Virus record (IMG/VR): IMGVR_UViG_3300047994_000374
Location: 62,001-126,000 of that record
Reading direction: 5' to 3' (one strand)
Length of the DNA: 64,000 bases
Shown: positions 4,424 to 34,852 of the stretch, in pieces
Layout: each line of letters begins with the position of its first letter
How positions within the stretch are numbered: position 1 is the stretch's first letter
Position numbers and translations under genes: made by a program
The notes under the pieces: generated by a model
Databases searched by the model: none
What the model was told of the DNA's origin: nothing
The model's input: the letters and a program-made list of their open reading frames with translations, nothing else

Positions 4424-4499
4424 TGGTAGGCGCCTCGAGATTCGAACTCGAACTGGATCGTGTTTAAGACGATTTTCTCTGCCGTTGGAATACGCGCCC
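4424..4499 (-). tRNA. tRNA-Leu(UAA), short variable loop, encoded CCA
   Basis: Folds by hand to a cloverleaf: anticodon arm ATCGT-CTTAAAC-ACGAT, T arm TCGAG-TTCGAAT-CTCGA, ACCA 3' end; 76 nt. Confidence 0.9.
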
Positions 4500-18895: not shown

Positions 18896-19156
18896 TTAAA
18901 GAGTTTTTACTGCACGCAAAATTTCATCGTTAGTGTAAACCGATTCCAGATCTACCGCCAGTTCCTCGCCACAAGCACAATGCCATGACTCGTAAACAAA
19001 CGCCTCGCTTTTACCCATGGTAGTCTTCTTACCAACCGTTTCAACGCTACAGGCAAGACACGCCAATCTACTATAACACGAAACCAATTTATCACCACCA
19101 CTATAATTCGTCATAACTTTTACTTCCGTTATTCTTAAATGGGAATCTTTTACCAC
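18896..19156 (-). CDS. Zinc-ribbon hypothetical protein
   Basis: CLAC...CACG; likely start 19114, 24 nt after a box. Confidence 0.6.
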   Translation of the reverse strand: MVKDSHLRITEVKVMTNYSGGDKLVSCYSRLACLACSVETVGKKTTMGKSEAFVYESWHCACGEELAVDLESVYTNDEILRAVKTL

Positions 19157-19264
19157 AAATTATACATCAAAAGAATATACGCTGTAAGTAAAAAGAGCCC
19201 TCCGATAACGAACGAAAGCTTGATCTGCTTACTTGTATAAGTATGTGTGTCCATGTGGGTGATA

Positions 19265-19702
19265 TTATTTTTCATAGAAGCGAAAGATCTTTTGCACCAC
19301 ACGAATGTCAATGGTCGGACGCGAAGCTCGATAAGATTGAATCGCGTCCACGATCTTGCCATTACGCCACCAATTAAGCTCGATATCAGTCGGTGGAGTC
19401 CAGGAACGAACCTCTTTACTTGCCCGATCATTTAAGATGCTCGTCAGTAGATCGAACAACACATTCAGGTTTTCCGTGCTTTGAGTTTCCAGCATGGTTG
19501 TAAATACAGTCCCAATAGAAGAGGGTGGAAGAATTGTTTTACCCTCCTCTTTATTGACTGCCTTCATGCTTAGCTTGGTCGGAATACTTTCACTAAGATC
19601 TTCGGTATGCTGTTGTTTTGCCGATGGGATATCTTGAAGCGTATCCTTTCGATCGGGAGAAACTTGAGTGTAGGTGGTTACGATTTTTCCGATGGCGCTC
19701 AT
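19265..19702 (-). CDS. Hypothetical protein; C-terminus weakly resembles the L7/L12 C-terminal domain
   Basis: GKIVDAIQSYRASRPTIDIRVVQK. Confidence 0.55.
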   Translation of the reverse strand: MSAIGKIVTTYTQVSPDRKDTLQDIPSAKQQHTEDLSESIPTKLSMKAVNKEEGKTILPPSSIGTVFTTMLETQSTENLNVLFDLLTSILNDRASKEVRSWTPPTDIELNWWRNGKIVDAIQSYRASRPTIDIRVVQKIFRFYEK

Positions 19703-22256: not shown

Positions 22257-22318
22257 ATCTTAGGTTGGCTTTATATATTAAATGGGAATTGGGATAGGGG
22301 GTTTTCGTCTGGGGCTTG

Positions 22319-22354
22319 CGGCAAGGCTTTTGCATATTAGCAATCTCTATACCA
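22319..22354 (-). promoter_or_regulatory. Face-to-face sigma54-type elements
   Basis: Minus TGGTATAGAGATTGCT; plus CGGCAAGGCTTTTGCA; both GG-N10-GC. Confidence 0.75.
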
Positions 22355-22368
22355 TGAAGCCCAAACGT

Positions 22369-22417
22369 AAAAAAAATATCCCCAACCTATAAACAGACTG
22401 GGGATAACTTTTTTTTT
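22369..22417. terminator. Bidirectional intrinsic terminator
   Basis: A8-TATCCCCA...TGGGGATA-T9. Confidence 0.75.
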
Positions 22418-22488
22418 ATGTGGATCGATCATATCATATGCGGATTGTTTTTAGTGAATGGGAAAGCCTGTTTTCTTTTTAGGTTAGT

Positions 22489-22523
22489 TGGTATGTATTG
22501 TGGATATTGCAAACGCTATGCCA
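22489..22523 (-). promoter_or_regulatory. Sigma54-type promoter with degenerate mirror element
   Basis: Minus TGGCATAGCGTTTGCA; plus TGGTATGTATTGTGG. Confidence 0.75.
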
Positions 22524-22542
22524 GTAATACAACAGGCAAAAG

Positions 22543-22569
22543 AAAAGCCCTACCATTACAGTAGAGCTT
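22543..22569 (-). terminator. Intrinsic terminator
   Basis: AAAAGCCCTACCATTACAGTAGAGCTT. Confidence 0.6.
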
Positions 22570-22682
22570 CAATGAATTAGATCCTCAGCCGCGATCTTCC
22601 TATACTTCTTTCTATTGTTTAAATGAGAATGAGCCGTGATGCTTAAGGTGCCTAGGATAACGGGTAAGATCCATGGTCAAGC

Positions 22683-22886
22683 TCACTTACACGCATACAC
22701 GCCACTAACTACACTACAATGAACATGCAGGGAGTATGCCACAGGTTTATCATGGATCTTGATAGTGCTGCTTTTATTATCGGCGTAGCTCCCCTGAACA
22801 TTCAAAGACGATTGAATGTCTTTGGTTTGAACGACATAATACCCGAGCCCGAGAACCGCTGCAACTACTACCATGAGAGTTTTCAT
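22683..22886 (-). CDS. Small membrane-anchored/secreted protein
   Basis: Hydrophobic N-terminus; box 28 nt upstream. Confidence 0.65.
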   Translation of the reverse strand: MKTLMVVVAAVLGLGYYVVQTKDIQSSLNVQGSYADNKSSTIKIHDKPVAYSLHVHCSVVSGVYACK

Positions 22887-22944
22887 TGTATGTATATCCT
22901 TGTGTGTGCGTTAGATGGGAATTGTTTATTATTGGGACGAAGCT

Positions 22945-23220
22945 TTAATGCTCGTTTGGTTTTTCGACTTCTTTACAGCAAGCTTCATAGGCTTTAGAGA
23001 ATTCCAGCCCGCTTTCAGAGCCGGTAAGAGAGGCGATCTTACTCGAGTATAAAACGCAAATGGGATGCCGGTTTAAAACATCCGTAGAAAAACCAGGCTC
23101 ACTCGAAAGGACGGCACGAAGATCTGTAATCGCTCGTGAGAAGGAATGAATTACACCGCTGGCATTACAAGCCATTTGGCAATCCAAAGCATCTTGTGAA
23201 AGCTCTTTAATCGTTTTCAT
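22945..23220 (-). CDS. Hypothetical phage protein
   Basis: Box 25 nt upstream. Confidence 0.75.
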   Translation of the reverse strand: MKTIKELSQDALDCQMACNASGVIHSFSRAITDLRAVLSSEPGFSTDVLNRHPICVLYSSKIASLTGSESGLEFSKAYEACCKEVEKPNEH

Positions 23221-23255
23221 TGTATTAGCCTTTTCTTATTTTTAAATGGGATTGT

Positions 23256-23525
23256 TTAGCGGTAGAAGGTACAGTTAGGGAGAAGAGCTTTAGCAGCCTC
23301 ACGAGATGGCGCTCGAAAGTAAACCTCGACACCGTTTTCGTTCCAAGCGCAAAACATGTAGGAGCCTCTTACCCAGCCCCAATAAGCGCCACCTTGATCA
23401 TAGTCGCCGTTCAGAGGCATATAGCGAAGATGAACCTTGCCCATAAGCTCGGTTGGTTTACAGTCCGATTGACGACCCATAGGAGCGCCGTACTTACTAC
23501 TTACGTTTCGTTTGAAGGGGAGCAT
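23256..23525 (-). CDS. Hypothetical phage protein (YGAPMGR...YDxGGAYWG motif)
   Basis: Box 25 nt upstream. Confidence 0.75.
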   Translation of the reverse strand: MLPFKRNVSSKYGAPMGRQSDCKPTELMGKVHLRYMPLNGDYDQGGAYWGWVRGSYMFCAWNENGVEVYFRAPSREAAKALLPNCTFYR

Positions 23526-23587
23526 AGTATATGTTTATTCTTATTGGTAAATGGGAAGGGGTTTAGTTTTTTATTTGGCAAGGCTTA

Positions 23588-23622
23588 TGGCACAATAATC
23601 TCATATAGCAAAACTTGATCCA
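23588..23622 (-). promoter_or_regulatory. Sigma54-type promoter with mirror element
   Basis: Minus TGGATCAAGTTTTGCT; plus TGGCACAATAATCTC. Confidence 0.7.
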
Positions 23623-23639
23623 TATATTCAAAGGACAAT

Positions 23640-23669
23640 AAAAAAGCCCGACCATTACAGTCAGGCTTT
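23640..23669 (-). terminator. Intrinsic terminator
   Basis: A6-GCCCGACCATTACAGTCAGGCTTT. Confidence 0.7.
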
Positions 23670-23678
23670 AATTACAGT

Positions 23679-23969
23679 TCAGATGTCAAGGGCGCAAAAC
23701 TGTTTGACCAAGATCTTGTGCTTGTAAACTTTGCACCAAGGACCACGACGAAACCAGCGCCCCGGACCACCATAAGAATCATACCAGCCCGTCAAGTCTT
23801 GTGCCAATTCGTTACGATCGGTCTCTTCATCAATCGGACCATAAACCGCCTCGACCGCTTTACGATCGTAGATGGCAATATGAGTGCAGGATTCGCCATC
23901 ATCATTAACTGTGCCAGACTTCAAGGGATTAATTGAGGGAAGGTCGACATATTCTTTATCGTGGCTCAT
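23679..23969 (-). CDS. Hypothetical protein
   Basis: Box 24 nt upstream. Confidence 0.7.
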   Translation of the reverse strand: MSHDKEYVDLPSINPLKSGTVNDDGESCTHIAIYDRKAVEAVYGPIDEETDRNELAQDLTGWYDSYGGPGRWFRRGPWCKVYKHKILVKQFCALDI

Positions 23970-24004
23970 ATGATTACCTGTCCTTAATATTAAATGGGAA
24001 TTGT

Positions 24005-24295
24005 TTAGCGTCCAATTTCAGTAATAAACTTTAGAGCTTGGCGCTTGGTGCTGAATTGCTGAAACTTTGAAGCCGTGTCAATGCTACCATCGGCATTAGC
24101 AAAGCGGACCGTAAAGAGGCGAGGCGAGCCATCATCGAATCGTTCCGAGGTAATGAAGTAACGACCAAAGTAGATCGGATTATACACGATCGACTTGAAA
24201 AAGCGCATGGTGTCTTTTGAAAACCAGTGCCCGCCAGAAGCCTTGTTTGCTTCCTGAATTTCGCGCATCGTATTGTAAACTTTGGGAGTGGGCAT
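24005..24295 (-). CDS. Hypothetical phage protein (WFSxDTMRFF motif)
   Basis: Start reassigned to ATG 24295, 24 nt after the box. Confidence 0.75.
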   Translation of the reverse strand: MPTPKVYNTMREIQEANKASGGHWFSKDTMRFFKSIVYNPIYFGRYFITSERFDDGSPRLFTVRFANADGSIDTASKFQQFSTKRQALKFITEIGR

Positions 24296-24522
24296 AATAT
24301 TCTCGCTATTGTTTATTAAATGGGAATTAGAATGCCCAGTACTTACAGCGATCGCAAGTATCATCACCAGGGTTTTGCGCCCCTAGGGAATGCTTACAGT
24401 GTTTGCAGGTAGGCTTAGGAATAGGGAGCCCATAACTATCGATTGCTTTTTTCGGGATAAGAAGCATATCCTTTGATTGTCTAATGTGGTAAATGGGAAT
24501 TTGGATCCTTGGTTTGGGCTTG

Positions 24523-24557
24523 TGGCGAGCTTATTGCTTTTTGCAAACATCATACCA
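24523..24557 (-). promoter_or_regulatory. Face-to-face sigma54-type elements
   Basis: Minus TGGTATGATGTTTGCA; plus TGGCGAGCTTATTGCT. Confidence 0.75.
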
Positions 24558-24574
24558 TATAACCAACTGACAAT

Positions 24575-24607
24575 AAAAAACCCGATCCATTATAGACCGG
24601 GTTTTTT
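24575..24607. terminator. Bidirectional intrinsic terminator
   Basis: A6-CCCGATC...GACCGGG-T6. Confidence 0.7.
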
Positions 24608-24877
24608 ATGCGGAGCGCCAACCATTCCTTTAAGTCGTCGTCGTGAGCATTGCCAGCTTGACAAGTATATCGTTTTATTTACAGCCCCATCACAATATAG
24701 GTTAAGAGAAACATACTGATACAACAGAGCACGCCACTAAAGACTTCATGTGCCATCATTCGTTTATCGTCGTTCATGTTATTACCTATTGAGATTATTA
24801 AAAGCCCTCTAACCCAAAAGATGAGCTAGAAGGCTTTAAAGAGTTAGATAAGGGCGATCCTAGTAAATTACAGGGAA

Positions 24878-25114
24878 TTACAGGGTAGAATATACGCGAC
24901 CCTTGGACCATACGCCCATCATTGACCCATCGCTTTGCTTTACCCCGACCCATTGCCATTCTTGAACGAACGCTAAATGATCCGCGAGGCTTGCACATTC
25001 AAGAGCCACTCGTTTATCCTTACGAAAGTCTCCGATGCGTTCATGGGTCGCGAGCGAATAAACCCCGAACGTCCGACCTTTCAAAGCTTTAACCGTTTGC
25101 ATAGTTATCTCCAA
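24878..25114 (-). CDS. Hypothetical protein
   Basis: ORF track; box upstream (likely start 25102). Confidence 0.6.
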   Translation of the reverse strand: MEITMQTVKALKGRTFGVYSLATHERIGDFRKDKRVALECASLADHLAFVQEWQWVGVKQSDGSMMGVWSKGRVYSTL

Positions 25115-25215
25115 TGGTATAGATTAAATGGGAAATGTTTGTGGCATGTTTATAATCGATTCTACGCTTTTTAAGGCTCCACGATTATTAACTTTATACA
25201 ATAACTCGAAGCTAT

Positions 25216-25231
25216 TGCAATGATAGTGCCA
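25216..25231 (-). promoter_or_regulatory. Consensus sigma54-type promoter (no mirror element)
   Basis: Minus TGGCACTATCATTGCA = TGGCAC-N5-TTGCA. Confidence 0.75.
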
Positions 25232-25260
25232 CAGCTATCCTAAAACCTTTACTCCCCTAA

Positions 25261-25455
25261 TCAATTGTAGGAATGGGAAAGATTAAAAACTTCGACCTTG
25301 AGCTTTCGTTCTGAGAAGTCTGAATAGGTCTCTTCCAATTCCCCGACCTTTGATTCCCAATATTCCCGAACCTCATTATCAGATCCACCTCCACTGTAAA
25401 GGGTCAGGAGGTTCATCTTGATCTCTTGAGCGAGCTTCTTATAATTCGTTTTCAT
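25261..25455 (-). CDS. Hypothetical protein
   Basis: Start reassigned to ATG 25455, 24 nt after the box. Confidence 0.65.
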   Translation of the reverse strand: MKTNYKKLAQEIKMNLLTLYSGGGSDNEVREYWESKVGELEETYSDFSERKLKVEVFNLSHSYN

Positions 25456-25499
25456 GATATACCCTATGGTAAATGTTAAATGGGAATTGTTTATAGGGC

Positions 25500-25694
25500 T
25501 TAATCTTTTTCCGTGCCACGCAAAAGATTGACCGCGCTCCAAAACCCATCATCAAAGCCCGCAAGGATATCGGCGACCTGTTTCTTTTTGAGCAATCCTT
25601 TTTCTAAATGGGATTGCAATTGAAGCTCATAGTTCTTTAGTGTCTCTTCCCGGATTCTCAAAACCTCAGATCGTTTCATTAGAGTATCCTCCAC
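25500..25694 (-). CDS. Hypothetical protein
   Basis: ORF track; likely start 25679 with GGAGG upstream. Confidence 0.65.
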   Translation of the reverse strand: MEDTLMKRSEVLRIREETLKNYELQLQSHLEKGLLKKKQVADILAGFDDGFWSAVNLLRGTEKD

Positions 25695-26087
25695 GAATGA
25701 ATAGTAAATGGGAAATAAGGAAGTTAGGCGTAAAGATTACTTAGTGGCTTTATAACCAAGAGCCATGCCAGCGACGAAACTACACATAACCCATGTCACG
25801 ACAACCGAGCCGAGTGTAAAAGCAACGCCCTGGACAAAATGCGACGTGAGGCCTGCGAGCGACAATCCAACGAGTAGAGCGATAATGATCTTCATGATAT
25901 CTCCTATAGGTATTATTAAATGGGAATTGTTTACTTTGAATTCATGCGGCGGATAATAAACTGAAGGACCGCATTCGCTTGTTTCATCTGGTTGAGTTTT
26001 AAAACGAAACCGTTCTTTTCGATCTGGCTCATATCCTTTTCTTATTCTTTTGATGAAATGGGAAATGCTCGTGTGTGTGGGTCTATG

Positions 26088-26122
26088 TGGCTGGCTCTTT
26101 GCTTATTGCACAACCCATACCA
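26088..26122 (-). promoter_or_regulatory. Face-to-face sigma54-type elements
   Basis: Minus TGGTATGGGTTGTGCA; plus TGGCTGGCTCTTTGCT. Confidence 0.7.
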
Positions 26123-26138
26123 CTTATCCACTGGACAT

Positions 26139-26175
26139 AAAAAAATCCCGATCAACTTAATGACCGGGATCCTTT
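26139..26175 (-). terminator. Intrinsic terminator
   Basis: A7-TCCCGATCA...TGACCGGGAT. Confidence 0.65.
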
Positions 26176-26713
26176 ACCTCACACTCCCGCCAAACTCAAA
26201 ACCTTATTGATCTCTTTCTCATAATCAGCCGCGGCGCCTTTAAGCCCCACCTTCTTTGCGGTTGCTGCCTGTTTACGAAGAAGCTCAACTCGGATGAAAA
26301 CTTGTGCATTGGTCATAGTAGTAGTAATATCCTTTGGTTATTATTAAATGGGATTATGGTTTAGATTGCACTTTACAAAGACTTTACGTACTCTTTTGAT
26401 CCATCCTGGTATTCAATGATCAAGACTTTATTACGATAATCTTGCGTCCTCCACTTCTTAACTTCTTTTGAGTCAACCTTCATGCCCGGTTCAAAAGTTC
26501 CAGGTCGCACCATTCGATCCATGATATCCTCCAAGGTTAATGATTAAATGGGAAAATGATATTATGAAACCACTGTAATTTAAGTATAGAACTGTTGTCT
26601 TTAAAAACCGCCCCTACAATCGATTATTAAAAGAAAAAGATATACTGACAAGGATCAGATCAAAAGCTCGTCTCAATTCATTTTCGCGACTGGAAACGGC
26701 ATATACTAATAAT

Positions 26714-26899
26714 TCAGCGAGCCGTTACTTTACCCGTAAGACATGCGAGATCAAAGCGCTCCTGAGAAAACTTAGGATTGTCTTGTCGAAAGAATACGGA
26801 GAAGCTGTCAATCAAAAGTCGAAGCTCATCAGGGGAAGCTCCACACTTCTTATGGTTGTGGATGATAGAGGCTGCGGCGATCATATGAGTTTTCGTCAT
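26714..26899 (-). CDS. Small protein, duplicate of 27680-27868
   Basis: DNPKFSQxRFDLACLTGKVTAR shared. Confidence 0.75.
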   Translation of the reverse strand: MTKTHMIAAASIIHNHKKCGASPDELRLLIDSFSVFFRQDNPKFSQERFDLACLTGKVTAR

Positions 26900-26958
26900 T
26901 GTAGTTATTATGGGGTTATTGTATTAAATGGGAATTGGGTTATTAGGGATTATGGGTC

Positions 26959-26994
26959 TGGTATAGGGTTTGCTTAATTGCGAATACTATGCCA
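26959..26994 (-). promoter_or_regulatory. Face-to-face sigma54-type elements
   Basis: Minus TGGCATAGTATTCGCA; plus TGGTATAGGGTTTGCT. Confidence 0.75.
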
Positions 26995-27013
26995 TTTGAC
27001 TTTTTACAACTAT

Positions 27014-27041
27014 AAAGAGCCCATAAACAACAGGGCTCTTT
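27014..27041. terminator. Intrinsic terminator
   Basis: AAAGAGCCC...GGGCTCTTT. Confidence 0.65.
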
Positions 27042-27055
27042 ATATAAACCACGCT

Positions 27056-27643
27056 TCAATTACAAGGGCAGGTAACTTTCCTAAGAGAGCAGTATTGATC
27101 CAAGTCGGCACAAGTAGGAGAATGTGCCGCGGTAGGGTAATCGGGATTCATCAAAGTACCTGATCCGGTATGCTTCAATCCGCAAGCGTGCCCCGTTTCA
27201 TGAGCAATGCTAACCGAATACATATCAGAATCGACGTCTGACATATTCTGCAGATAGATAGTGGCTCCTATCTGATCTGGCGAATAAGAGTCATTATACT
27301 CGTAGGATTCAAGCTCACCTTGAACCGAAGTGTAGGCAATGGTCCCACTATCACCATGCGCCACAATGTTAGCCTTAGTATCTTTACGGATCACAATCGT
27401 TGACCAACCTACATGAGCCTCATTAGGCAAAGAAAAAGCCGGAACGATCGTATAACTAAAAACCGGACCATCTTTGAATTGTGACCAGGATGACATCTCT
27501 GATTCAATAACGCTCACCTCTTCCGAAGAAAAGTCGCTTGAGATCTGGACATCATAACCACCAGGCAATCCCGACTCAGCGGCACAACCAACTGAGCCAA
27601 TTGCGAAGGAGCCGAGAACCGTCATCATCAAGAGCGTTTTCAT
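27056..27643 (-). CDS. Lipoprotein metzincin (matrixin-like) metalloprotease
   Basis: Lipobox SVGC; HETGHACGLKH plus LMNP. Confidence 0.8.
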   Translation of the reverse strand: MKTLLMMTVLGSFAIGSVGCAAESGLPGGYDVQISSDFSSEEVSVIESEMSSWSQFKDGPVFSYTIVPAFSLPNEAHVGWSTIVIRKDTKANIVAHGDSGTIAYTSVQGELESYEYNDSYSPDQIGATIYLQNMSDVDSDMYSVSIAHETGHACGLKHTGSGTLMNPDYPTAAHSPTCADLDQYCSLRKVTCPCN

Positions 27644-27679
27644 TATTGATTAGCCTTTTAGTTATATTGAATATGGGAA

Positions 27680-27868
27680 TTAGCGAGCCGTAACTTTACC
27701 CGTAAGACATGCGAGATCAAACCGATCTTGGGAAAACTTCGGGTTATCGTTACGGAAGAGGGTAGAGAAGCTGTCGATCAAAAGTCGTACCTGTTTATCT
27801 GTTGCACCATTCTTCTTGTGGTTGTGGATGATGGCAGCGGCTTCAATCATAAACTTTTTGGTTAGCAT
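27680..27868 (-). CDS. Small protein, duplicate of 26714-26899
   Basis: High protein and DNA identity to 26714-26899. Confidence 0.75.
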   Translation of the reverse strand: MLTKKFMIEAAAIIHNHKKNGATDKQVRLLIDSFSTLFRNDNPKFSQDRFDLACLTGKVTAR

Positions 27869-27935
27869 GGTGGTAGTGATTGGGGTTTATTGTTTATTGA
27901 ATGGGAATTGTAATAGCTCTTTGGTTCTGGTATTG

Positions 27936-27971
27936 TGGATCGGATCATGTAATATAGTAAACACTATACCA
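27936..27971 (-). promoter_or_regulatory. Degenerate face-to-face sigma54-type elements
   Basis: Minus TGGTATAGTGTTTACT; plus TGGATCGGATCATGT; same position in the cassette as the others. Confidence 0.55.
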
Positions 27972-27988
27972 ACCATACGCAAGACAAT

Positions 27989-28018
27989 AAAAAGCCCCGA
28001 CCATTACAGTAGGGCTTT
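27989..28018 (-). terminator. Intrinsic terminator
   Basis: A5-GCCCCGACCATTACAGTAGGGCTTT. Confidence 0.65.
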
Positions 28019-28026
28019 AGAACAAT

Positions 28027-28230
28027 TCAATCGATCGTCAGTTCCCCCATGATCAATGCATTCTCCGTGCCAATAACCGTATCCTCTTCGCAAGCCTCGC
28101 AATGATAATCCTCAGCGTCCGGCTCGACACCACCGCAAGTGAATTCATTGCAGGTAGTACAATGCCCGTCGTATTCTTCGGCAGTAATCGTTTTCATGAT
28201 CATTATCCTTTTTATTATAATCACATACAT
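28027..28230 (-). CDS. Zinc-ribbon protein, paralog of 15360-15551
   Basis: EFTCGGVEPDAE...CEAC...GTENAL shared. Confidence 0.7.
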   Translation of the reverse strand: MYVIIIKRIMIMKTITAEEYDGHCTTCNEFTCGGVEPDAEDYHCEACEEDTVIGTENALIMGELTID

Positions 28231-28234
28231 ACAC

Positions 28235-28468
28235 TTACACGCATAGCTTACTTATAGTGGGGGAAAAGCTAAACACTTGAACCATCGTAGAAGACTTCAA
28301 TCCAAGGATCGTTTCAACTCCACTGGAACTTTTGGCAGCAATCTTGGTATAGTTTCCTTTATCCGTGGAGATGTCGCGAATGTCCTCCACCATATATTCC
28401 GTGCCAAGAAAGATAAAGCGGACCCCAACATCTAATTCAGAGCTTCGTCGGTTGAGCATCATAACCAT
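28235..28468 (-). CDS. Hypothetical protein
   Basis: Box upstream; first gene of a cassette. Confidence 0.65.
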   Translation of the reverse strand: MVMMLNRRSSELDVGVRFIFLGTEYMVEDIRDISTDKGNYTKIAAKSSSGVETILGLKSSTMVQVFSFSPTISKLCV

Positions 28469-28515
28469 ACCCTATTCTTATAAGTAATGGGAAACGAGAA
28501 ACTCTTTGGTGCGCG

Positions 28516-28551
28516 TGGTATAAGGATTGTATAATAGCAAAGCTCATGCCA
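28516..28551 (-). promoter_or_regulatory. Face-to-face sigma54-type elements
   Basis: Minus TGGCATGAGCTTTGCT; plus TGGTATAAGGATTGTA. Confidence 0.75.
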
Positions 28552-28567
28552 TACAATCAAACCACAT

Positions 28568-28594
28568 AAAAAGCCCGGCAATAAAAGCCGGGCT
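28568..28594 (-). terminator. Intrinsic terminator
   Basis: A5-GCCCGGC...GCCGGGCT. Confidence 0.75.
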
Positions 28595-28607
28595 CTCTTA
28601 TGCTACG

Positions 28608-28796
28608 CTAAAAGACGTTAGGTGCGCACCACAACTCTATAGTGTCGTTCAAGCTTTCGAGCGCGCGGGAACGATCCTGATCGGTAGATAACGGATCGTA
28701 TTGCGTCGCGTTATAGTGATTGATTGCGTCTAACAGATCTTCGGCTCCGGTCAAAAGCATTCTCCGCAAACGTATAACCTTCTCAGTTGGTTTCAT
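28608..28796 (-). CDS. Hypothetical protein
   Basis: ORF track; GGAG upstream. Confidence 0.6.
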   Translation of the reverse strand: MKPTEKVIRLRRMLLTGAEDLLDAINHYNATQYDPLSTDQDRSRALESLNDTIELWCAPNVF

Positions 28797-28823
28797 GTTA
28801 TCTCCACAATAGTTATAGCTTTT

Positions 28824-29018
28824 TCATGATTCTTCTGAATCCTTGAAGGATCCATCGCTCCACAAGAAAACACCCGTGTAAGTCATTGCTTGCCCATCAT
28901 TATCAACATCATCACCTTCCCCGTAGATAATCAATTGCCCATAATTATCTCGCTCCAAAGAAAGGGGATCCGCACCATCAAGAAGATCATTCAACTCTTT
29001 TTTCGTGTATGTTTTCAT
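28824..29018 (-). CDS. Small acidic protein, paralog of 11160-11342
   Basis: Start reassigned to ATG 29018 after the box and AGGAG. Confidence 0.7.
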   Translation of the reverse strand: MKTYTKKELNDLLDGADPLSLERDNYGQLIIYGEGDDVDNDGQAMTYTGVFLWSDGSFKDSEES

Positions 29019-29071
29019 GGCATCTCTCCTAATCTTTTGAGGTAAATGGGAATAGCTTTTATTAGGGTAAC

Positions 29072-29106
29072 CGGCTTGTTTTTTGCTATTAGCTATAATC
29101 ATACCC
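29072..29106 (-). promoter_or_regulatory. Face-to-face sigma54-type elements
   Basis: Minus GGGTATGATTATAGCT; plus CGGCTTGTTTTTTGCT. Confidence 0.6.
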
Positions 29107-29123
29107 ACTATCTTTTGCCCAAT

Positions 29124-29159
29124 AAAAAAGCCGATCCCTTTCGAGACCGACTTCTTTTC
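29124..29159 (-). terminator. Intrinsic terminator
   Basis: A6-GCCGATC...GACCGAC-TTCTTTT. Confidence 0.55.
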
Positions 29160-29400
29160 TTTCAATCCTCCGAATGAAAGCGAGCGAAACAGTTTTCCCA
29201 ACCTTGCCAGTAATTGGCTTCGTAGTCCCCGTTATCGTCAGGAAACCGCGGCTCAACGCCATCAAGGCAATCGGTGTAACCTTGGTTGTATGCTTCGCGA
29301 TTCATCTTGACGGTTTTCATGATGGTATTCCTTTTGAGAGGGGAGGGAAAAAGAAACCGGGTAACTACCTTGAACTTTTATAAGAAATGGGATGAGCCGA

Positions 29401-29562
29401 TCAATAGCCTAACCAAGCCAGAAACTCACTCGCCTCATACTACTCATGATCCCCCATCTCACAAAGAAACTCCGCCATGTCGCAACAATGGTCCTTGATC
29501 TCTTTCATGGCGCGGGTCTTTGAGATGCGAAGGTCTTTGGCTGATTCGGAGTAGGTGGGCAT
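29401..29562 (-). pseudogene. Small gene with internal TAG (MPTYSESAK...GDHE*YEASEFLAWLGY*)
   Basis: ATG 29562 is 24 nt from a box; the frame continues plausibly past the TAG at 29440-29442. Confidence 0.45.
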
Positions 29563-29769
29563 AATAATAGGGCTAAAGAATAAGGAATGGGATAAGGACA
29601 ACATAAGATAACCTCCGCTTCGTTCACCCAATAGAGAATAATAGAGTGAAATGTAGGTAAGGAGGGGATAAAGGGATTGGAGCTGAATAAGAATTGTAAA
29701 TGATTGTAAAGTTTTATTATAGTTTTTTATATTGTAAATGATTGTAAATAAGTTATTATATTGTTTGAA

Positions 29770-29805
29770 TGGTATGTATAATGCTTTATTGCATGGGGTG
29801 TGCCA
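29770..29805 (-). promoter_or_regulatory. Outermost face-to-face sigma54-type elements
   Basis: Minus TGGCACACCCCATGCA; plus TGGTATGTATAATGCT. Confidence 0.7.
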
Positions 29806-29862
29806 GGCGGGAAAACTGGGGCAGATTGTCATGCGCGGCAGAGATAAGGCTCCCAAATCGAC

Positions 29863-29976
29863 TTAAAATCATAAAAACAAACTAATAAACTAAATTAAAA
29901 TCATAAAAACAAACTAATAAACTAAATTAAAATCATAAAAACAAACTATATTCTAAACTAATAAACTATATTCTAA
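29863..29976. repeat. Tandem repeats: 32-bp unit x2.7 plus a 14-bp direct repeat x2
   Basis: TTAAAATCATAAAAACAAACTAATAAACTAAA at 29863, 29895, partial 29927; AAACTATATTCTAA at 29943 and 29963. Confidence 0.9.
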
Positions 29977-30000
29977 CTTAAAACCAATCAACTCAAAATA

Positions 30001-30033
30001 CTACTACTACTACTACTACTATTATTATTATTA
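30001..30033 (-). repeat. (CTA)7(TTA)4 microsatellite, reading as TAAx4 TAGx7 in frame with the upstream CDS
   Basis: Read directly from the sequence. Confidence 0.9.
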
Positions 30034-30360
30034 AAGAAAAGCATCCATACTAATAACCCTCTTTAAAAGCTTTAACCCTTCCTCTGGATCATATTGTTTA
30101 TTCTCTTCTTTATAAACCAAATTATAGAGCTTATAAACAACTATCTCACTTACGCCCTTATACTCCCAATAAATTACTTCCCAACGAACCTTTATTTTAT
30201 TATCCTCTTTATCCTCAATAACAATGTTAATTTCAAACTTATCACTATATTTATCTGCATAGGGATAATAGTAAAAAGCATGGGTTTTATTTTTATGAAC
30301 CCCTATACATTTCATCTCCCTTACTTCTACTGAATACTTACCACACACTGGACATTTCAT
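30031..30360 (-). CDS. Zn-finger/xxFL array protein
   Basis: MKCPVC...C...H; ends MDAFL. Confidence 0.8.
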   Translation of the reverse strand: MKCPVCGKYSVEVREMKCIGVHKNKTHAFYYYPYADKYSDKFEINIVIEDKEDNKIKVRWEVIYWEYKGVSEIVVYKLYNLVYKEENKQYDPEEGLKLLKRVISMDAFL

Positions 30361-30612
30361 TTGATTTATACCTGGTTATTCTTTCTATATTGGGGCTTAA
30401 ATAAATCGACAATGGGAGTGAAAATAAATAGAGAAATCTACTAATAAAGTTGGATATTTTTGATTAATATTTGTGTTATTATTTGATTGTTTTAAAGCCT
30501 ATTTATTATATTTATTTGGCGGGAATTAGAAAAATAAGCTTACTTTGATGTTTGGGTCCGAAAGGCGAAAACATTATGAGCCGATTTAAAAAGACAAAGT
30601 TGGATATAGGGC

Positions 30613-30924
30613 TCAAATAAACCCCTGCAACCTAACCACACGATTCAACAGAATGTATGCTTCTTTGGGTGTATAGAATTTTTTGTCATGATAGAGCGTT
30701 CTCCCCGCATGAAGCACATCAATTTGTGTCGCATAAGTGTTTATTCTTTTTGGCTCGCTGTCAAAAGAATAAGAAGTTAACATTTGAAACTGAACGATAC
30801 CGCTGCTATTTTCTAAATGATAACGAATCCACATTGAATCTCCAACGCGTTCAAAATAATATGGAGCATGTCGACATATTTTATTATCCATAACCACCGC
30901 TTGATCGCAAATTGGACAATTCAT
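30613..30924 (-). CDS. Zn-finger/xxFL array protein
   Basis: MNCPIC; ends LQGFI. Confidence 0.8.
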   Translation of the reverse strand: MNCPICDQAVVMDNKICRHAPYYFERVGDSMWIRYHLENSSGIVQFQMLTSYSFDSEPKRINTYATQIDVLHAGRTLYHDKKFYTPKEAYILLNRVVRLQGFI

Positions 30925-31265
30925 AAAAAGGACCTTAATTTATCCACCTTAGATAAGAGCTGAATAGCCTCTTCATGGGCATATACATTGGCATCAGTAT
31001 AAATAATCTCCTGCCCATCAATAACTCGATCATCCAGAAGATAAATGATACTTACCCACCCGGAACTACTATCTATTCGGTTGGACTTTAATGGATGAGC
31101 CCCTGCTTCGAACCTATATTTATTATTTGAGCCGGCATTTTCAAAAAACCAAATGGTATATCCGAGTTCCAAATAATCATAGAAAAGATGCGATGGACCT
31201 GCTTCCTCACATCGCCAGCCCGAGTAAGTCTTGAAGCACGGATCATAACAAATTGGGCAGTTCAT
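30921..31265 (-). CDS. Zn-finger/xxFL array protein
   Basis: MNCPIC; ends LRSFL. Confidence 0.8.
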   Translation of the reverse strand: MNCPICYDPCFKTYSGWRCEEAGPSHLFYDYLELGYTIWFFENAGSNNKYRFEAGAHPLKSNRIDSSSGWVSIIYLLDDRVIDGQEIIYTDANVYAHEEAIQLLSKVDKLRSFL

Positions 31266-31297
31266 AAGAAAATCTGTAATTTAATCATTATTGTTAT

Positions 31298-31603
31298 TTA
31301 TGTGAAGCTATGCAATTTAATAAAACGATTCAGAAGTATTAACGCTTGAACCGGATCCCTTTTATTTCCTTGGTCTTCATAAATAAGTGTTTTAACTCCG
31401 AGGGAAAGATCACTACTACATTCTATTTTTGTCCTTGAATAAGGGGGAATGGGAACATCAATTGTGATAATGCTGTTATTCCCAATGATTTTAGAAATTA
31501 CAAAAGAATAACTGTAAAGATAAAATCCTCCGTCATCATGAAGGCAAGTCTTATGCCTTGTTATTATTTTTAAGCAAAACGGGCATATCATCGGCGGATT
31601 CAT
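31298..31603 (-). CDS. Zn-finger/xxFL array protein
   Basis: CPFC; ends LHSFT. Confidence 0.8.
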   Translation of the reverse strand: MNPPMICPFCLKIITRHKTCLHDDGGFYLYSYSFVISKIIGNNSIITIDVPIPPYSRTKIECSSDLSLGVKTLIYEDQGNKRDPVQALILLNRFIKLHSFT

Positions 31604-31923
31604 AGGAGCGCCTGCATCTTCATAAATCTCTTTAAAAGAGCAAAGCTTTCGGGAACACTATGGTGACAATTATCTTTATAAATCCAATCGGACCCAGCTT
31701 TATTCTTAATTCTAGTTCCATTGAATTCGCACTCAAGCCTCCAATAATGTTCTCGCGACGATTCTATAGACTTTTGAAAGAACAAAAATACTTGAATGGA
31801 ATAATAAGTTGAATTACAACTTTTATAAAGGTCTGTTCTATGATTATATTCTATGGTTTGTCCCTGGCAAATACTTCCTATGCTTTTTTTCTCCATCTCT
31901 TTACCACAAACAGGACAGTTCAT
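31600..31923 (-). CDS. Zn-finger/xxFL array protein
   Basis: MNCPVC; ends MQALL. Confidence 0.8.
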   Translation of the reverse strand: MNCPVCGKEMEKKSIGSICQGQTIEYNHRTDLYKSCNSTYYSIQVFLFFQKSIESSREHYWRLECEFNGTRIKNKAGSDWIYKDNCHHSVPESFALLKRFMKMQALL

Positions 31924-32246
31924 AGGAACGCCTTTATATTTATGAGCTTATAAATAAATGGGAGAAGCGCGGCATCTGCTTCTCGAAACCTATCTTCTTC
32001 ATAGATTGTTTTCCCTACAGTAAATCTATCATTATTATCGAAGGGCGGCATTAACTGACTTAAGTAGCCTCCAGAGCCGCGAGGATCGCACCAACTATGC
32101 CATCTTACGTTTTCTTTAAGGATGGCGAGCGTGAATTCAACGAGCCCGTGTTGGAAAAGATGATCCTGCTCATGGCAATGAAAACGTGTAACAATTTTCG
32201 ATTTGCTTTCGTTTTTTAGGATTTTATTACAGAAGGGACAGTTCAT
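31920..32246 (-). CDS. Zn-finger/xxFL array protein
   Basis: MNCPFC; ends IKAFL. Confidence 0.8.
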   Translation of the reverse strand: MNCPFCNKILKNESKSKIVTRFHCHEQDHLFQHGLVEFTLAILKENVRWHSWCDPRGSGGYLSQLMPPFDNNDRFTVGKTIYEEDRFREADAALLPFIYKLINIKAFL

Positions 32247-32316
32247 TTGGGGAATGGGTGGCGGAGATTTAAAATGGGTTGGGGGTGGAATAATTATGGT
32301 GATGATGCTGTAAAAT

Positions 32317-32634
32317 TTATAAGAAAGCTTGCAAGGTAGTAGTAAGTTTTTTTAAGATTTCCATTGCCTTATAACAATCATAATAAGAATCGTTCGCCTG
32401 AAATACAATTGTATGATCGGATTTATAAGTTCCTATATGAAAACGAAAAGCTCCAGAATCATAAATGTCCATGAAAATTTTATATGCGTTGGGCAAGTAA
32501 ATTGAATAGGTCGTGTCATTATAAAAATAAAAATTATGCCCTTTATTGATATTTTTTATACACATATATTTAGCGGCTGTCCCGATAATATTTTGTTTAG
32601 CAATTAATAGTTTATTGCAGACCGGGCAATTCAT
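32317..32634 (-). CDS. Zn-finger/xxFL array protein
   Basis: MNCPVC; ends LQAFL. Confidence 0.8.
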   Translation of the reverse strand: MNCPVCNKLLIAKQNIIGTAAKYMCIKNINKGHNFYFYNDTTYSIYLPNAYKIFMDIYDSGAFRFHIGTYKSDHTIVFQANDSYYDCYKAMEILKKLTTTLQAFL

Positions 32635-32942
32635 AAGAAAGCTCCAAGCTTTTTTACTCGTTTTATAAAGTCATAAGACTGTTGGTATGGAACATGATCT
32701 TGGCTGTTAAAAACAAGATTTCCGTCGGCCATAACTTGTGTGGATTCCCGGGTAAATGACCACTTTTCTATTTTATTAATAGGTCTATAAAAAATAATAC
32801 GATAAGAATTGGGCTCGTCGGATGAAACAAATGTGGGCCAAATTGTAACATCATGTCCAGTAATACCACCACTGTAATTTAAACATCGAATGATTAATGG
32901 ATCATATGCTAATTTTTGATTGCAAATAATACACTTATTCAT
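32631..32942 (-). CDS. Zn-finger/xxFL array protein
   Basis: CIIC; ends LGAFL. Confidence 0.8.
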   Translation of the reverse strand: MNKCIICNQKLAYDPLIIRCLNYSGGITGHDVTIWPTFVSSDEPNSYRIIFYRPINKIEKWSFTRESTQVMADGNLVFNSQDHVPYQQSYDFIKRVKKLGAFL

Positions 32943-33214
32943 AAAAATCCTTTTAATTTTGCAAAACGATCAATGTAGGACATGATTTGATCAAGTGGAA
33001 TGAAATCGTTCTTTATTGTAATTATTTCGGAACTGTTATCCCCGTAGGACATCTTTGTGTCAGATTTATAATCGGATGTAATAAAATAACAACCACATAA
33101 TCTCAAATCATAGCCCTCTGGATCCATATAAACTGTGTGATTAAACACATTCCATCTACAAATAAAAAATTCTTCTTCTTTAATTAAAGGTTTATAACAG
33201 ATTGGGCAATTCAT
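32939..33214 (-). CDS. Zn-finger/xxFL array protein
   Basis: MNCPIC; ends LKGFL. Confidence 0.8.
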   Translation of the reverse strand: MNCPICYKPLIKEEEFFICRWNVFNHTVYMDPEGYDLRLCGCYFITSDYKSDTKMSYGDNSSEIITIKNDFIPLDQIMSYIDRFAKLKGFL

Positions 33215-33537
33215 AAGAAAGCCCTTAACTTCATCATCCTCTCAACAAATGCCATGGAATCTGTTAATGGAACAAACATATTAAAATCTTGATGTGTTGT
33301 GCATTGTCCAATGTTATATGTAAACGATGTATATCCTGATGGGTGATTGTTATCTTTGAATGAGTAAAATGAAATGGAGTTTGAAATACCTGTCGATTTC
33401 TGAGTTTGAATAATGTAATCATCCTCTTGATAATAAGTAAAAAAATGTCGAATGGGACCGCCCTCACAACGAGTGGTTTTCAATCGATCGGTCATTAGCG
33501 GGAGGTGGCAAACGGGACAATTTATTTGCTTGCTCAT
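33211..33537 (-). CDS. Zn-finger/xxFL array protein
   Basis: CPVC; ends LRAFL. Confidence 0.8.
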   Translation of the reverse strand: MSKQINCPVCHLPLMTDRLKTTRCEGGPIRHFFTYYQEDDYIIQTQKSTGISNSISFYSFKDNNHPSGYTSFTYNIGQCTTHQDFNMFVPLTDSMAFVERMMKLRAFL

Positions 33538-33845
33538 AGAAATCCTTGCAATTTGATAATTCTTTCAAATAATTTCATACCTTCTTGAATATCATAATTG
33601 ACGTCAGTTTTATAAATTTGATCCAACCACCAGTCAGCGGCTTCGTCCTTAATATAAATTATAGTTGGCATATTTATTGGTCTTGGAGGATTAGGGGCAA
33701 TGGAAATAAATCGATATCCCTTTTGCTCAATGGAATAGGAGTGATCATTAAATATCTCAAAACAATGGTCATTTCGAAAGCATTGAAATATTCGATGCAA
33801 ATCAAAAGTATTATTATTTCCTGAATTACATACAGGACACTTCAT
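33534..33845 (-). CDS. Zn-finger/xxFL array protein
   Basis: MKCPVC; ends LQGFL. Confidence 0.8.
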   Translation of the reverse strand: MKCPVCNSGNNNTFDLHRIFQCFRNDHCFEIFNDHSYSIEQKGYRFISIAPNPPRPINMPTIIYIKDEAADWWLDQIYKTDVNYDIQEGMKLFERIIKLQGFL

Positions 33846-34150
33846 AGGAAGGATTGCAATTTCGCCATACGCTTGAGAAGGGTATGGGCTTCTTTAAGAG
33901 AACGCAATTGGTTATCCGTATAAATCGTTTTGGGGCGATTTCCATTCAGAGTATAGGTATATATCTCTGTTCGAATCGATTCTTCCTTTATTAGCTTTGT
34001 ATGCCCTGAAATCATAGTTAGTGTTGCATGGTCTCTTAAAATATAAAAGTGATCGGAATAATAACATGTGGAATGATCAGAATTATAGCATGTCCACTTG
34101 GTTTCGGTAAGTCGTTGTACGAGATTTTTATTGCAAAATGGACAGTTCAT
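33842..34150 (-). CDS. Zn-finger/xxFL array protein
   Basis: MNCPFC; ends LQSFL. Confidence 0.8.
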   Translation of the reverse strand: MNCPFCNKNLVQRLTETKWTCYNSDHSTCYYSDHFYILRDHATLTMISGHTKLIKEESIRTEIYTYTLNGNRPKTIYTDNQLRSLKEAHTLLKRMAKLQSFL

Positions 34151-34162
34151 TGGGCTTATCGT

Positions 34163-34571
34163 TCATAGGAACCCTTTTATGTTATTTATTCTATTCAAGA
34201 AATCATTTACTTCTTCGGGTGGAGTATATTTTTTGACACTAACTATTTCATATTTCATATTTCATATAATATTTATTTTTATCTTCATTTTCACCATAAA
34301 CTTTTGTTATTGGACCATTATAGTTAATATATTTTGGATTATCAAAAGATACTATTCCGACGGAACTGTAAATTTTAAATGTTTTGCGAGTTGGCCATAA
34401 ATTATAATATCTAATATTTTTATCTAAATTCATCCAAACTTCAAAAAGATGCTCGCTCACATTGGAAAGATGTGGAAATAATAATCTATCTTTTTGGGCA
34501 AAAGAACAGGAGAGAAATCTTGCAGGATCTCCTTTTGTTTCATGCTTACAAATGGGACAAAGTATTTTCAT
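34163..34571 (-). pseudogene. Zn-finger/xxFL array member with frameshift
   Basis: CPIC start; the family C-terminus ...NRINNIKGFL* (stop 34163-34165) lies in another frame. Confidence 0.65.
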
Positions 34572-34852
34572 AGAAAGCTTCTTAATTTCATGAACCGTTC
34601 AATATGGGACTTGATTTCAGTAATGGGAATAAATTCTTTTGTATAAATAGGATCGGTTCCAGGATTGTGATATACATCGACGTTATAAAATGACGTAATT
34701 GGGATATCAGCATTTTTATCAAAAGCATCAATTGTAAGAATAATACTTTCAATTATAATTCGATAACCATCCTTATAAACTTCAACGTCATGTCCGTTTG
34801 TTTGATGGATATTTTTCTTATTAAATTTTTGATTGCAAATAGGACATTTCAT
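34568..34852 (-). CDS. Zn-finger/xxFL array protein
   Basis: MKCPIC; ends LRSFL. Confidence 0.8.
   Translation of the reverse strand: MKCPICNQKFNKKNIHQTNGHDVEVYKDGYRIIIESIILTIDAFDKNADIPITSFYNVDVYHNPGTDPIYTKEFIPITEIKSHIERFMKLRSFL

Follow-up and report, generated by a model that had tools for sequence, protein, structure and literature searches.

Results

Repeated sigma54-type dyads head small early genes of a 394-kb phage

Small early genes of a 394-kb phage are headed by repeated terminator-plus-promoter modules whose predicted promoter looks like two bacterial sigma-54 promoters facing each other, and the same double element recurs in many unrelated phages, including the cultured Vibrio phage VpV262. 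We analysed a window of 64,000 nucleotides (positions 62,001 to 126,000 of the IMG/VR record IMGVR_UViG_3300047994_000374), in which an earlier note had described eleven sigma54-type promoters at 22319-29805, ten of them built as face-to-face mirror pairs. This observation was confirmed. The eleven minus-strand elements have the 5' T of TGG, in + strand coordinates, at 22354, 22523, 23622, 24557, 25231, 26122, 26994, 27971, 28551, 29106 and 29805. The mirror halves start on the + strand at 22319, 22489, 23588, 24523, 26088, 26959, 27936, 28516, 29072 and 29770, as the note had listed. The spacing of the element was exact in all 11 gene-ward and all 10 mirror halves, although GC itself was less well kept than GG: GG was present in 11/11 gene-ward cores and GC exactly 10 nt later in 10/11 (27971 has AC instead), while in the mirror halves GG was present in 10/10 and GC in 6/10. 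T-G at the -14/-13 positions was kept in 9/10 mirrors, so the mirror is better conserved than the note had thought. The dyads span 35 or 36 bp, five of each, and the 5-6 nt between the two GC dinucleotides are A/T only in 10/10.

Chance was excluded as an explanation for this arrangement. The probability of a mirror CC at the right distance in at least 10 of 11 sites is 2e-8. To score the elements with a matrix not derived from them, we hand-counted a sigma54 matrix from 29 intergenic Salmonella ChIP sites (PMC3844500), which gave 13 hits of at least 14 bits in the window against 1.1 +/- 0.9 in block shuffles. With this matrix the gene-ward cores scored from below 8 to 18.9 bits and five scored 14-19 bits. 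Half of the window's cores have T at the fourth position (TGGTAT), which lowers the score of six gene-ward cores and is a departure from the Salmonella sites, where that position is C in 29/29. A matrix built from the 11 sites found nothing comparable elsewhere in the 64 kb, nor in the 10 kb to the left of the window.

Anatomy of the individual modules

All elements are described here on the minus strand. The first dyad of the block, P11 (29770..29805; 16.4 bits), is followed by a ~240-nt leader that carries two TTTACAATCATTTACAAT repeats. In P10 (29072..29106) the gene-ward core starts GGG instead of TGG, whereas the gene-ward core of P9 (28516..28551) scores 18.9 bits, the best in the window, and that of P8 (27936..27971) is the one with AC instead of GC. 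P7 (26959..26994) and P6 (26088..26122) could be compared with a 90-97% identical variant: in P7 the changes at 26966 and 26967 fall in the N5 spacer of the mirror and leave TGG and TTGC intact, and in P6 no change was found inside the dyad among the variant positions covered, while a 16-nt insertion lies 4 nt outside it. P5 (25214..25231; 15.3 bits) is a solitary sigma54-like core with neither a mirror nor a terminator before it. Both halves of P4 (24523..24557) have GG-N10-GC. P3 (23588..23622) has a weak gene-ward core (8.1 bits, TGGATC) and a mirror of 11.9 bits. The gene-ward core of P2 (22489..22523) scores 17.4 bits and is followed only by a 31-codon ORF that runs into terminator T1. 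P1 (22319..22354), with its gene-ward core starting at 22354 and its mirror core at 22319, heads the long terminator-free operon to the left.

Nine of the dyads lie 15-20 nt after a rho-independent terminator or terminator-like hairpin and point at the next gene. These minus-strand terminators precede P1 (22377..22406, with T-runs on both strands), P2 (22544..22570, loop CTGTAATGG), P3 (23643..23669, loop CTGTAATGG), P4 (24573..24607, with T-runs on both strands), P6 (26139..26172), P7 (27010..27042, a terminator-like hairpin), P8 (27990..28021, loop CTGTAATGG), P9 (28568..28598) and P10 (29123..29156); the limits of those before P4, P6, P7, P8 and P10 are approximate. All but one of the strong terminators in the block is followed by a dyad, and the region 1-22 kb has neither terminators nor dyads. 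The cassettes carry no sigma70-like promoter and show no enrichment of such sites over shuffles, although perfect TTGACA boxes occur at 30-64 kb.

Each element is also followed by a gene-proximal TCCCATT box on the minus strand (22281..29592), the T of which, in + strand coordinates, is at 22287, 22463, 23556, 24498, 25133, 26063, 26933, 27906, 28492, 29051 and 29592. For nine of the ten dyads the box lies 55-67 nt after the TGG, and the same box precedes nearly every gene of the block at 1-30000. The box could itself be the real promoter. The dyad might be the operator of a dimeric or tetrameric DNA-binding protein unrelated to sigma54, encoded by the phage or the host, with transcription starting elsewhere, for example at the TCCCATT/CCCAT box, which in nine cassettes lies at a fairly narrow distance of 20-31 nt beyond the dyad. 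The dyad symmetry with its four conserved blocks is compatible with this reading, which we nevertheless consider doubtful for the reasons given below.

We next aligned the nine terminator-dyad modules of ~100 nt and found that they form a diverged repeat family with 64% mean column identity, in which the only invariant columns are the terminator T-run, GG(-24), C(-12), A(-10) and the mirror CC. The earlier note's view that the elements are not a recent duplication was therefore only half right, because the modules are homologous repeats and not independent inventions. Its view that they are not simple hairpins held: thirteen dyads folded as DNA did no better than shuffles, with z-scores from -1.5 to +1.25, unlike what is required of N4-type hairpin promoters or cruciform elements.

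The dyad recurs in unrelated phages

To determine whether the dyad is private to this phage, we scanned IMG/VR with the dyad pattern and obtained at least 185 strict dyads in at least 98 loci that span GC 0.28-0.62, against none in 2.39 Mb of control viral loci. Positions that the pattern left free followed sigma54 preferences, with R at position 7 in 96%, T at position 12 in 86% and W at position 16 in 97%. Other 350-480-kb phages carry the same terminator-dyad-CCCAT-box module, as shown by contigs of 448, 433 and 481 kb, and some even have the same CTGTAATGG terminator loop. L358/L390, a phage that shares only one 89-aa gene with the window, has three dyads in tandem after a terminator-like hairpin at the head of its early genes.

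These comparisons bear on the operator reading. The co-occurrence of box and dyad in three other huge phages is in its favour, and dyad symmetry and tandem arrays at 43-47 bp spacing are typical of sites for dimeric DNA-binding proteins and not of sigma54 promoters. On the other hand, the same half-site recurs in phages that share no DNA-binding gene in the sequence available and that span GC 0.28-0.62, whereas a phage-encoded factor should co-vary with its phage; the free positions follow sigma54 preferences; the centre spacing varies (spans of 33-38 bp), which rigid dimers tolerate poorly; solitary, oriented half-sites exist at VpV262 173 and 214 and at window 25231; and in L390 the dyads lie 215 bp from the nearest promoter.

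VpV262, which infects Vibrio parahaemolyticus, a member of a genus that has rpoN, carries four rightward cores of 17.0-17.9 bits in tandem at 173-327 (positions 173, 214, 255 and 310), two of them full dyads, just inside the left terminal repeat and before ORF1, pointing at its early genes. No other site of at least 14 bits exists in the genome except one intragenic hit, and no RNA polymerase or sigma gene is annotated. This position next to the terminal repeat, together with two lineages of small phages (10-60-kb contigs) in which three-dyad arrays lie within 0.3-0.6 kb of the terminase genes, could suggest packaging or terminase small-subunit recognition sites (cosB- or pac-like) or another genome-end signal. 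We regard this as very unlikely: in the window and in other huge phages the dyads are dispersed, ten or more per region, each behind a terminator, in L390 they lie before early genes and far from any terminase gene, and packaging sites differ between phage lineages whereas this half-site does not.

No canonical sigma54 or activator signature found and no room for an enhancer

The earlier note had named a genome search for rpoN and GAFTGA-containing genes as a check on its reading. No canonical RpoN box and no GAFTGA/GGTLFLDE signature was found on the 394-kb contig, in the window, in 1.1 Mb of dyad loci or in the whole VpV262 genome. Nor is there room for an enhancer (activator sites some 80-150 bp upstream), as a terminator lies 15-20 nt upstream and the previous gene directly before it. 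The mode of activation is therefore unexplained. Enhancer-independent activation has a precedent in the DctD AAA+ domain, which activates sigma54 promoters from solution (PMC3844500).

The cores might alternatively be promoters for a phage-encoded or virion-carried RNA polymerase or sigma factor that happens to have a -24/-12-like specificity. Huge phages often carry their own transcription proteins, and about 310 kb of the 394-kb contig lay outside the sequence read here. This reading appears unlikely, since the motif is the same in small phages, VpV262 has no annotated polymerase or sigma gene, and the 82 kb of the contig with precomputed Pfam hits hold no polymerase, sigma or AAA+ activator.

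The absence of an enhancer and of a canonical activator gene also leaves open, though with low confidence, that the dyads bind sigma54 or E-sigma54 but are not the promoters of the adjacent genes. They would then act as stable, silent closed-complex sites, possibly as traps that titrate host sigma54, as roadblocks or insulators next to terminators, or as anchors at the genome end that enters first. The symmetry offers two binding modes, tandem arrays of three or four dyads occur at genome ends or operon heads, and the early genes of L390 have their own near-perfect sigma70 promoters, that of the first early gene lying 215 bp after the dyads. However, in the window the dyad is the only promoter-like element after each terminator, the better-conserved half always points at the genes (10/10 in the window, 3/3 in L390 and all four cores of at least 17 bits in VpV262), and a few sites per genome would titrate little sigma54 before replication.

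Discussion

The interpretation offered in the earlier note, an unusual early-expression system built on sigma54-type promoters, is partly supported. The sigma54-type reading is well supported at the sequence level by the spacing, the independent matrix, the invariant key positions in a diverged repeat family and the recurrence in unrelated phages, and an early-expression system fits the position and gene content as well as the left-end location in VpV262. The roles that the note proposed for the mirror, namely activator-independent melting, a mutually exclusive switch giving short antisense RNA into the adjacent terminator, or sequestration of host RpoN, remain hypotheses.

The elements resemble the sigma54 (RpoN)-dependent -24/-12 promoters of bacteria such as the Salmonella sites of PMC3844500 in having TGG at -24 and TTGC at -12 with exact spacing, and in preferring R after TGGCAY, T before TGC and W after GC. 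Cores with TTGT or TTGA at -12 occur both in the mirror halves here and in natural promoters such as pspA and pspG. They differ in that two cores face each other within 35-37 bp, without an upstream enhancer or a known activator, in the frequent T at the fourth position in this phage, and in their occurrence as tandem arrays or repeat modules in phage genomes. A sigma54-like promoter, supported by TSS mapping and a promoter trap, has been assigned in Pseudomonas phage YuA (PMC10914365), which has one such promoter and for which no dyad and no repeat module is reported.

The modules can also be compared with the PeSL (promoter-early stem-loop) cassettes of T4-type phages (PMC2839356, PMC4122927), which are likewise small composite terminator/promoter repeats scattered through a region of small, non-essential ORFan genes. 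PeSL promoters are strong sigma70-type early promoters, whereas no sigma70-like site lies in the modules described here, whose predicted promoter is sigma54-type and dyad-symmetric. The 89-aa gene behind P3 has other neighbours and no module in the relatives L394 (87% identity) and L284 (84%), as expected from module-mediated shuffling, but no recombinant junction was seen and shuffling through the modules is not shown. Like T7, with its tandem early promoters A1-A3 at the left end, VpV262, L390 and the L430-type phages have several predicted host-polymerase promoters in tandem at the end that enters first, and as in P2 and 186 two promoters, here predicted ones, point at each other over a few tens of bp. 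The T7 and P2/186 promoters are sigma70-type, and in P2 and 186 the transcripts overlap and interfere. With +1 placed 12 nt after the GC, each core's predicted start here lies beyond the other's start; the two predicted transcripts would therefore run apart and not collide, although two polymerases could not sit there at once.

Our analysis establishes the sequence anatomy, the enrichment, the conservation and the recurrence of the dyads, while binding by E-sigma54, the start sites, dependence on rpoN and on an AAA+ protein, mutual exclusion and the mode of activation are inferred. While not definitive, the reading that we find somewhat more likely than not is that the eleven elements are copies of a widespread phage cis-element, each a -24/-12 (sigma54-class) promoter core usually built as a 35-37 bp dyad of two such cores facing each other. 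We propose that RNA polymerase of the as yet unidentified host, carrying sigma54, binds the gene-ward core and starts about 12 nt after its GC, giving a C/A-rich leader of 60-70 nt that contains the TCCCATT box. The mirror half would be a second genuine sigma54-type core that points into the preceding terminator, which is often bidirectional. As the two footprints overlap, only one holoenzyme could be bound at a time, and the mirror, which sits across the gene-ward +1, would give either an unproductive binding mode or a short antisense transcript. Opening would have to be driven by an ATPase acting from solution or by an unknown phage factor. The modules of the 394-kb phage head one- to four-gene cassettes of small early or host-takeover genes at the start of a unidirectional block more than 40 kb long, and in this view the dyads are host E-sigma54 promoter cores.

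Genomic setting of the elements

The window corresponds to bases 62,001-126,000 of a 394,192-bp viral contig from a moss metagenome (IMGVR_UViG_3300047994_000374, also filed as ena:ERZ12293633:scaffold_73_c1), for which no nucleotide relative was found among 50,697 deposited phage genomes in INPHARED. Positions 1-30,000 hold about 70 small genes, all on the minus strand, at a GC content of 0.42, and this block continues at least 10 kb to the left of the window. At about position 30,000 the GC content steps down to 0.33 for the remainder of the window (30,000-64,000), and genes to the right of this step mostly lack a Shine-Dalgarno-like stretch, while many on the left have AAGGA or GGAG. Some of the genes on the right are preceded by perfect TTGACA boxes (37683, 42492, 52585). 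Mapping of reads from four DNA runs gave only a few variant positions.

The recognizable genes of the block are typical of early or host-takeover regions and include DUF7168/DUF2786, DUF7447 and small HExxH (Peptidase_M10-like) proteins, several of which, some with signal-peptide-like starts, are scattered through the early block and beyond (3679-4320, 27056-27643, 39004-39687 and 39689-40297 in the window; 19053-19574 in locus L283). A 299-aa family found here lies elsewhere next to AcrVA2-like and ImmA-like genes; the homologues of the 299-aa gene lie in unrelated high-GC contigs. Most early proteins are orphans, and a search with the 61-aa early gene returned no homologues. A search of IMG/VR for DUF932 relatives returned nothing. 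Directly upstream of the first dyad, at 30031-37604 on the minus strand, lies a tandem array of 22-23 paralogous genes of about 100 aa, nearly all of which start with MNCP(V/I/F)C, a zinc-ribbon-like N-terminus. The gap in front of the block (29690-30035) is rich in repeats, with two copies of TTTACAATCATTTACAAT, a 32-bp tandem repeat x2.7 at 29863-29948 and a (TAC)n(TAT)n run, and may be an origin or a regulatory hub. The window also holds an IMP dehydrogenase/GMP reductase-like gene split by an intein (56855-59041), an IF-1-like gene (56622-56846), a release factor 2-like gene (44874-45962), tRNA-Leu(TAA) (4424-4499) and a GIY-YIG homing endonuclease (43780-44859). Stop-to-stop ORF lengths gave no clear sign of stop-codon recoding in this window.

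Sigma54-type half-sites are enriched and paired

We next examined the eleven minus-strand elements and ten mirror halves described in the earlier note and found every one of them at the position given there; the observation therefore holds. In the gene-ward halves GG was present in 11/11 and GC exactly 10 nt later in 10/11, while in the mirror halves GG was present in 10/10, GC in 6/10, and T-G at -14/-13 in 9/10. The dyads span 35 or 36 bp, and the 5-6 nt between the GC dinucleotides are A/T only in all ten. To score these sites independently, we built a sigma54 matrix by hand-counting the 29 intergenic Salmonella ChIP sites in Table 3 of PMC3844500. This matrix gave 13 window hits of at least 14 bits, compared to 1.1 +/- 0.9 in 200 shuffles, and 24 hits of at least 12 bits compared to 3.4 +/- 1.7. 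The chance of a mirror CC at the right distance in at least 10 of 11 sites is 2e-8. No comparable site lies elsewhere in the window or in its left flank.

The matrix also returned false positives. Two strong hits in the window (15405 and 28072) lie inside paralogous genes and share the same TGGCACGGAGAATGC, the hits in locus L304 (234-1024) are the reverse complement of ribosome-binding site plus ATGCCA, and in locus L350 one hit is the extended -10 of a consensus sigma70 promoter.

Terminator and dyad form a repeated module

Nine dyads lie 15-20 nt after a rho-independent terminator and point at the next gene, while element P11 (29805) opens the block and P5 (25231) is a solitary core. Terminator plus dyad is a repeat module, of which nine copies align over about 100 nt at 64% mean identity, and the only invariant columns are the terminator T-run, GG(-24), C(-12), the A two bases later, and the mirror CC. 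The copies are therefore homologous, which the earlier note had doubted, but the key positions are held by selection. All but one of the strong terminators in the block is followed by a dyad, and between 22 kb and 4.4 kb there are neither terminators nor dyads. Dyad P2, within 22337-22523, is followed only by a 31-codon ORF that runs through terminator 22377-22406 and into dyad P1, making a ~125-nt unit that may give a small RNA rather than a protein.

Alternative readings of the element were considered and rejected. The modules carry no sigma70-like promoter and show no enrichment for one. Reading TGGTATGAT or TGGTATAGT as an extended -10 fitted only 3 of 11 sites, with the wrong -35 spacing, and by eye none of the Bacteroidota-type (TAnnTTTG), MotA-box and IHF readings fitted. 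A hairpin or cruciform was rejected by folding, as the dyads do not fold better than shuffles.

Each dyad is followed by a second motif, (A/T)ATTCCCATT(T/C)A, within 55-67 nt for nine of the ten dyads. This motif also precedes nearly every other gene of the block, with 65 copies on the minus strand of 1-30000 (e.g. 22281-22287, 23550-23556) and only 2 on the + strand of the whole window; it lies 1-8 nt after the previous stop codon, with its T 30-31 nt before the next ATG. It occurs in locus L283 (10978-19303) and is conserved in the relatives L394 (260-269), as TTCCCATTTA, and L284 (378-388, 905-915, 1080-1090, 1365-1375), as TGA-CCCATTCA, where it twice abuts the ATG. In other huge phages it takes the lineage-specific forms CCCATCtaATAACGGA, CCCATCAaTTA and GCTCCCATTCAC. 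The motif could be a promoter for a phage factor, an RNA processing site or a translation signal.

Recurrence of the dyad in other phages

One 89-aa gene of the block (23256-23525) has homologues. The closest ones, at 84-87% identity, keep the CCCATT box but have other neighbours and no module, which is what module-mediated shuffling would produce. A scan of genome contigs with the 89-aa family showed no dyads. A distant homologue, at 45% identity, lies in a phage contig (L358, extended as L390) that shares nothing else with the window, and this contig has three dyads in tandem after a terminator-like hairpin, in an 830-bp gap at the head of its early genes. Here the gene-ward halves are canonical, while two of the three mirror halves are degenerate at -12. 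The L390 phage also has near-perfect sigma70 promoters directly before several early genes (1939-1967, 7575-7602, 8652-8679, 9318-9345), one of which matches 12 of 12 positions (TTGACA-16-TATAAT), and some of which leave almost no leader. That these early genes have their own sigma70 promoters fits a non-promoter role for the dyads, such as trapping or blocking.

To determine how widespread the element is, we scanned IMG/VR with TGGCATR-N4-TTGCWA-N13-15-TRCCA, which matched at least 118 loci. The 118 loci retrieved hold 185 strict dyads in 98 loci of GC 0.28-0.62, compared to none in 2.39 Mb of unrelated viral loci. Spans are mostly 35 or 37 bp, and tandem arrays of two to four dyads at 43-47 bp spacing are common. 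Positions that the pattern left free behave as in sigma54 promoters, with R at position 7 in 96%, T at 12 in 86% and W at 16 in 97%. A partial scan of IMG/VR with TCCCATTTAAT gave chance hits only, one of which lay on the 354-kb contig that also carries dyads.

Contigs of 448, 433 and 481 kb show the same module as the window, in which a terminator is followed by a dyad and then by a CCCAT box 20-35 nt further on, and in one of them the terminator has the same CTGTAATGG loop. The box has a lineage-specific extension, while the dyad half-site stays the same. This description rests on reading the huge-phage loci L441, L402 and L438 by eye, since a crude automatic detector found hairpin plus T-run beside only 13 of 42 dyads in huge-phage loci. 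In two lineages of 10-60-kb contigs, three-dyad arrays usually lie in the gap between divergent operons, next to the terminase genes, and in these small phages a second repeat (about 4 copies of TACTGTACCCAGTAGGGTATGCG) lies between the dyads and the terminase genes (L430 5800-5950; L447 3720-3830).

One locus is the left end of the cultured Vibrio phage VpV262. Just inside the 138-bp terminal repeat, and 700-860 bp before ORF1, lie four rightward cores at 173, 214, 255 and 310 that score 17.0-17.9 bits, and the last two are full dyads, with mirrors at 291 and 346. The rest of the 46-kb genome has one other hit of at least 14 bits, which is intragenic, compared to 0.7 +/- 0.9 hits in shuffles. 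No RNA polymerase gene is annotated in VpV262.

A predicted E-sigma54 promoter core in a dyad arrangement

A bipartite half-site with the exact sigma54 spacing and the sigma54 side preferences stays unchanged across unrelated phages of very different base composition, and also occurs as oriented single cores. This points to a universal host factor, and sigma54 is the only one known with this specificity. The better-kept half always points at the genes, and in the window nothing else could restart transcription after each terminator. We therefore read the gene-ward half as a putative E-sigma54 promoter core and the mirror as a second core. With +1 placed 12 nt after the GC, each predicted start lies inside the other core and beyond the other start, such that the two transcripts would run apart, with starts about 18 bp apart, while the two polymerases would exclude each other. 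In this view the mirror would fire into the preceding terminator, and as three or four of those terminators have T-runs on both strands, it would give at most a ~60-70-nt RNA. The element is real and is much more general than the earlier note could see, and by sequence it is a sigma54-class core in a new dyad arrangement and a new phage-wide setting, whereas binding by E-sigma54, the start sites (no RNA run was listed) and the function of the element are inferred from sequence. The interpretation offered in that note is supported in part.

Other findings do not fit this reading. There is no enhancer and no room for one. By exact degenerate patterns, neither a canonical RpoN box nor a GAFTGA-x5-G-x-FE signature was found in the 394-kb contig, the window, 1.1 Mb of dyad loci or the whole VpV262 genome, and precomputed Pfam hits for 82 kb of the contig show no polymerase, sigma or AAA+ activator. 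An activator working from solution is possible in principle, because the DctD AAA+ domain does so in Salmonella (PMC3844500), although no protein can be named for this role here. Half of the window's cores have T where all 29 Salmonella sites have C. In addition, dyad symmetry and operator-like tandem arrays keep a dimeric DNA-binding protein in play.

Literature searches found a sigma54-like promoter in phage YuA (PMC10914365) and the PeSL terminator/promoter cassettes of T4-type phages (PMC2839356, PMC4122927), but nothing on dyad-symmetric sigma54 sites in phages, in a search that did not extend to the original description of VpV262.

Sigma54 promoters are the one bacterial promoter class that is silent without an ATP-driven activator bound at a distant enhancer, and they are not regarded as a normal route for phage early transcription. 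Here a compact double sigma54-type core with no enhancer is found at the heads of early genes in many unrelated phages, with no activator gene in sight. A more far-reaching possibility, which we consider unlikely on present evidence although it is not ruled out, is that phages of many lineages, from 46-kb podoviruses to 480-kb megaphages, start their infection from enhancer-less, dyad-symmetric sigma54 promoters that would be opened without a canonical enhancer-binding protein. The opening could come from the double fork-junction geometry itself, from an ejected or very early phage protein, or from a host ATPase acting from solution; alternatively, the same dyads could serve to capture host E-sigma54. 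Either way this would be a new mode of sigma54 use and of host takeover. The presence of the element in a cultured phage of Vibrio parahaemolyticus, and its compact 35-bp form, which can be made as synthetic DNA, make these outcomes directly testable, and the element is also a useful annotation mark for early regions in huge uncultured phages. If E-sigma54 reads these sites, either a new way of opening sigma54 promoters exists, or phages depend on host stress or motility activators to start infection; if it binds them without firing, phages have a way to trap this holoenzyme.
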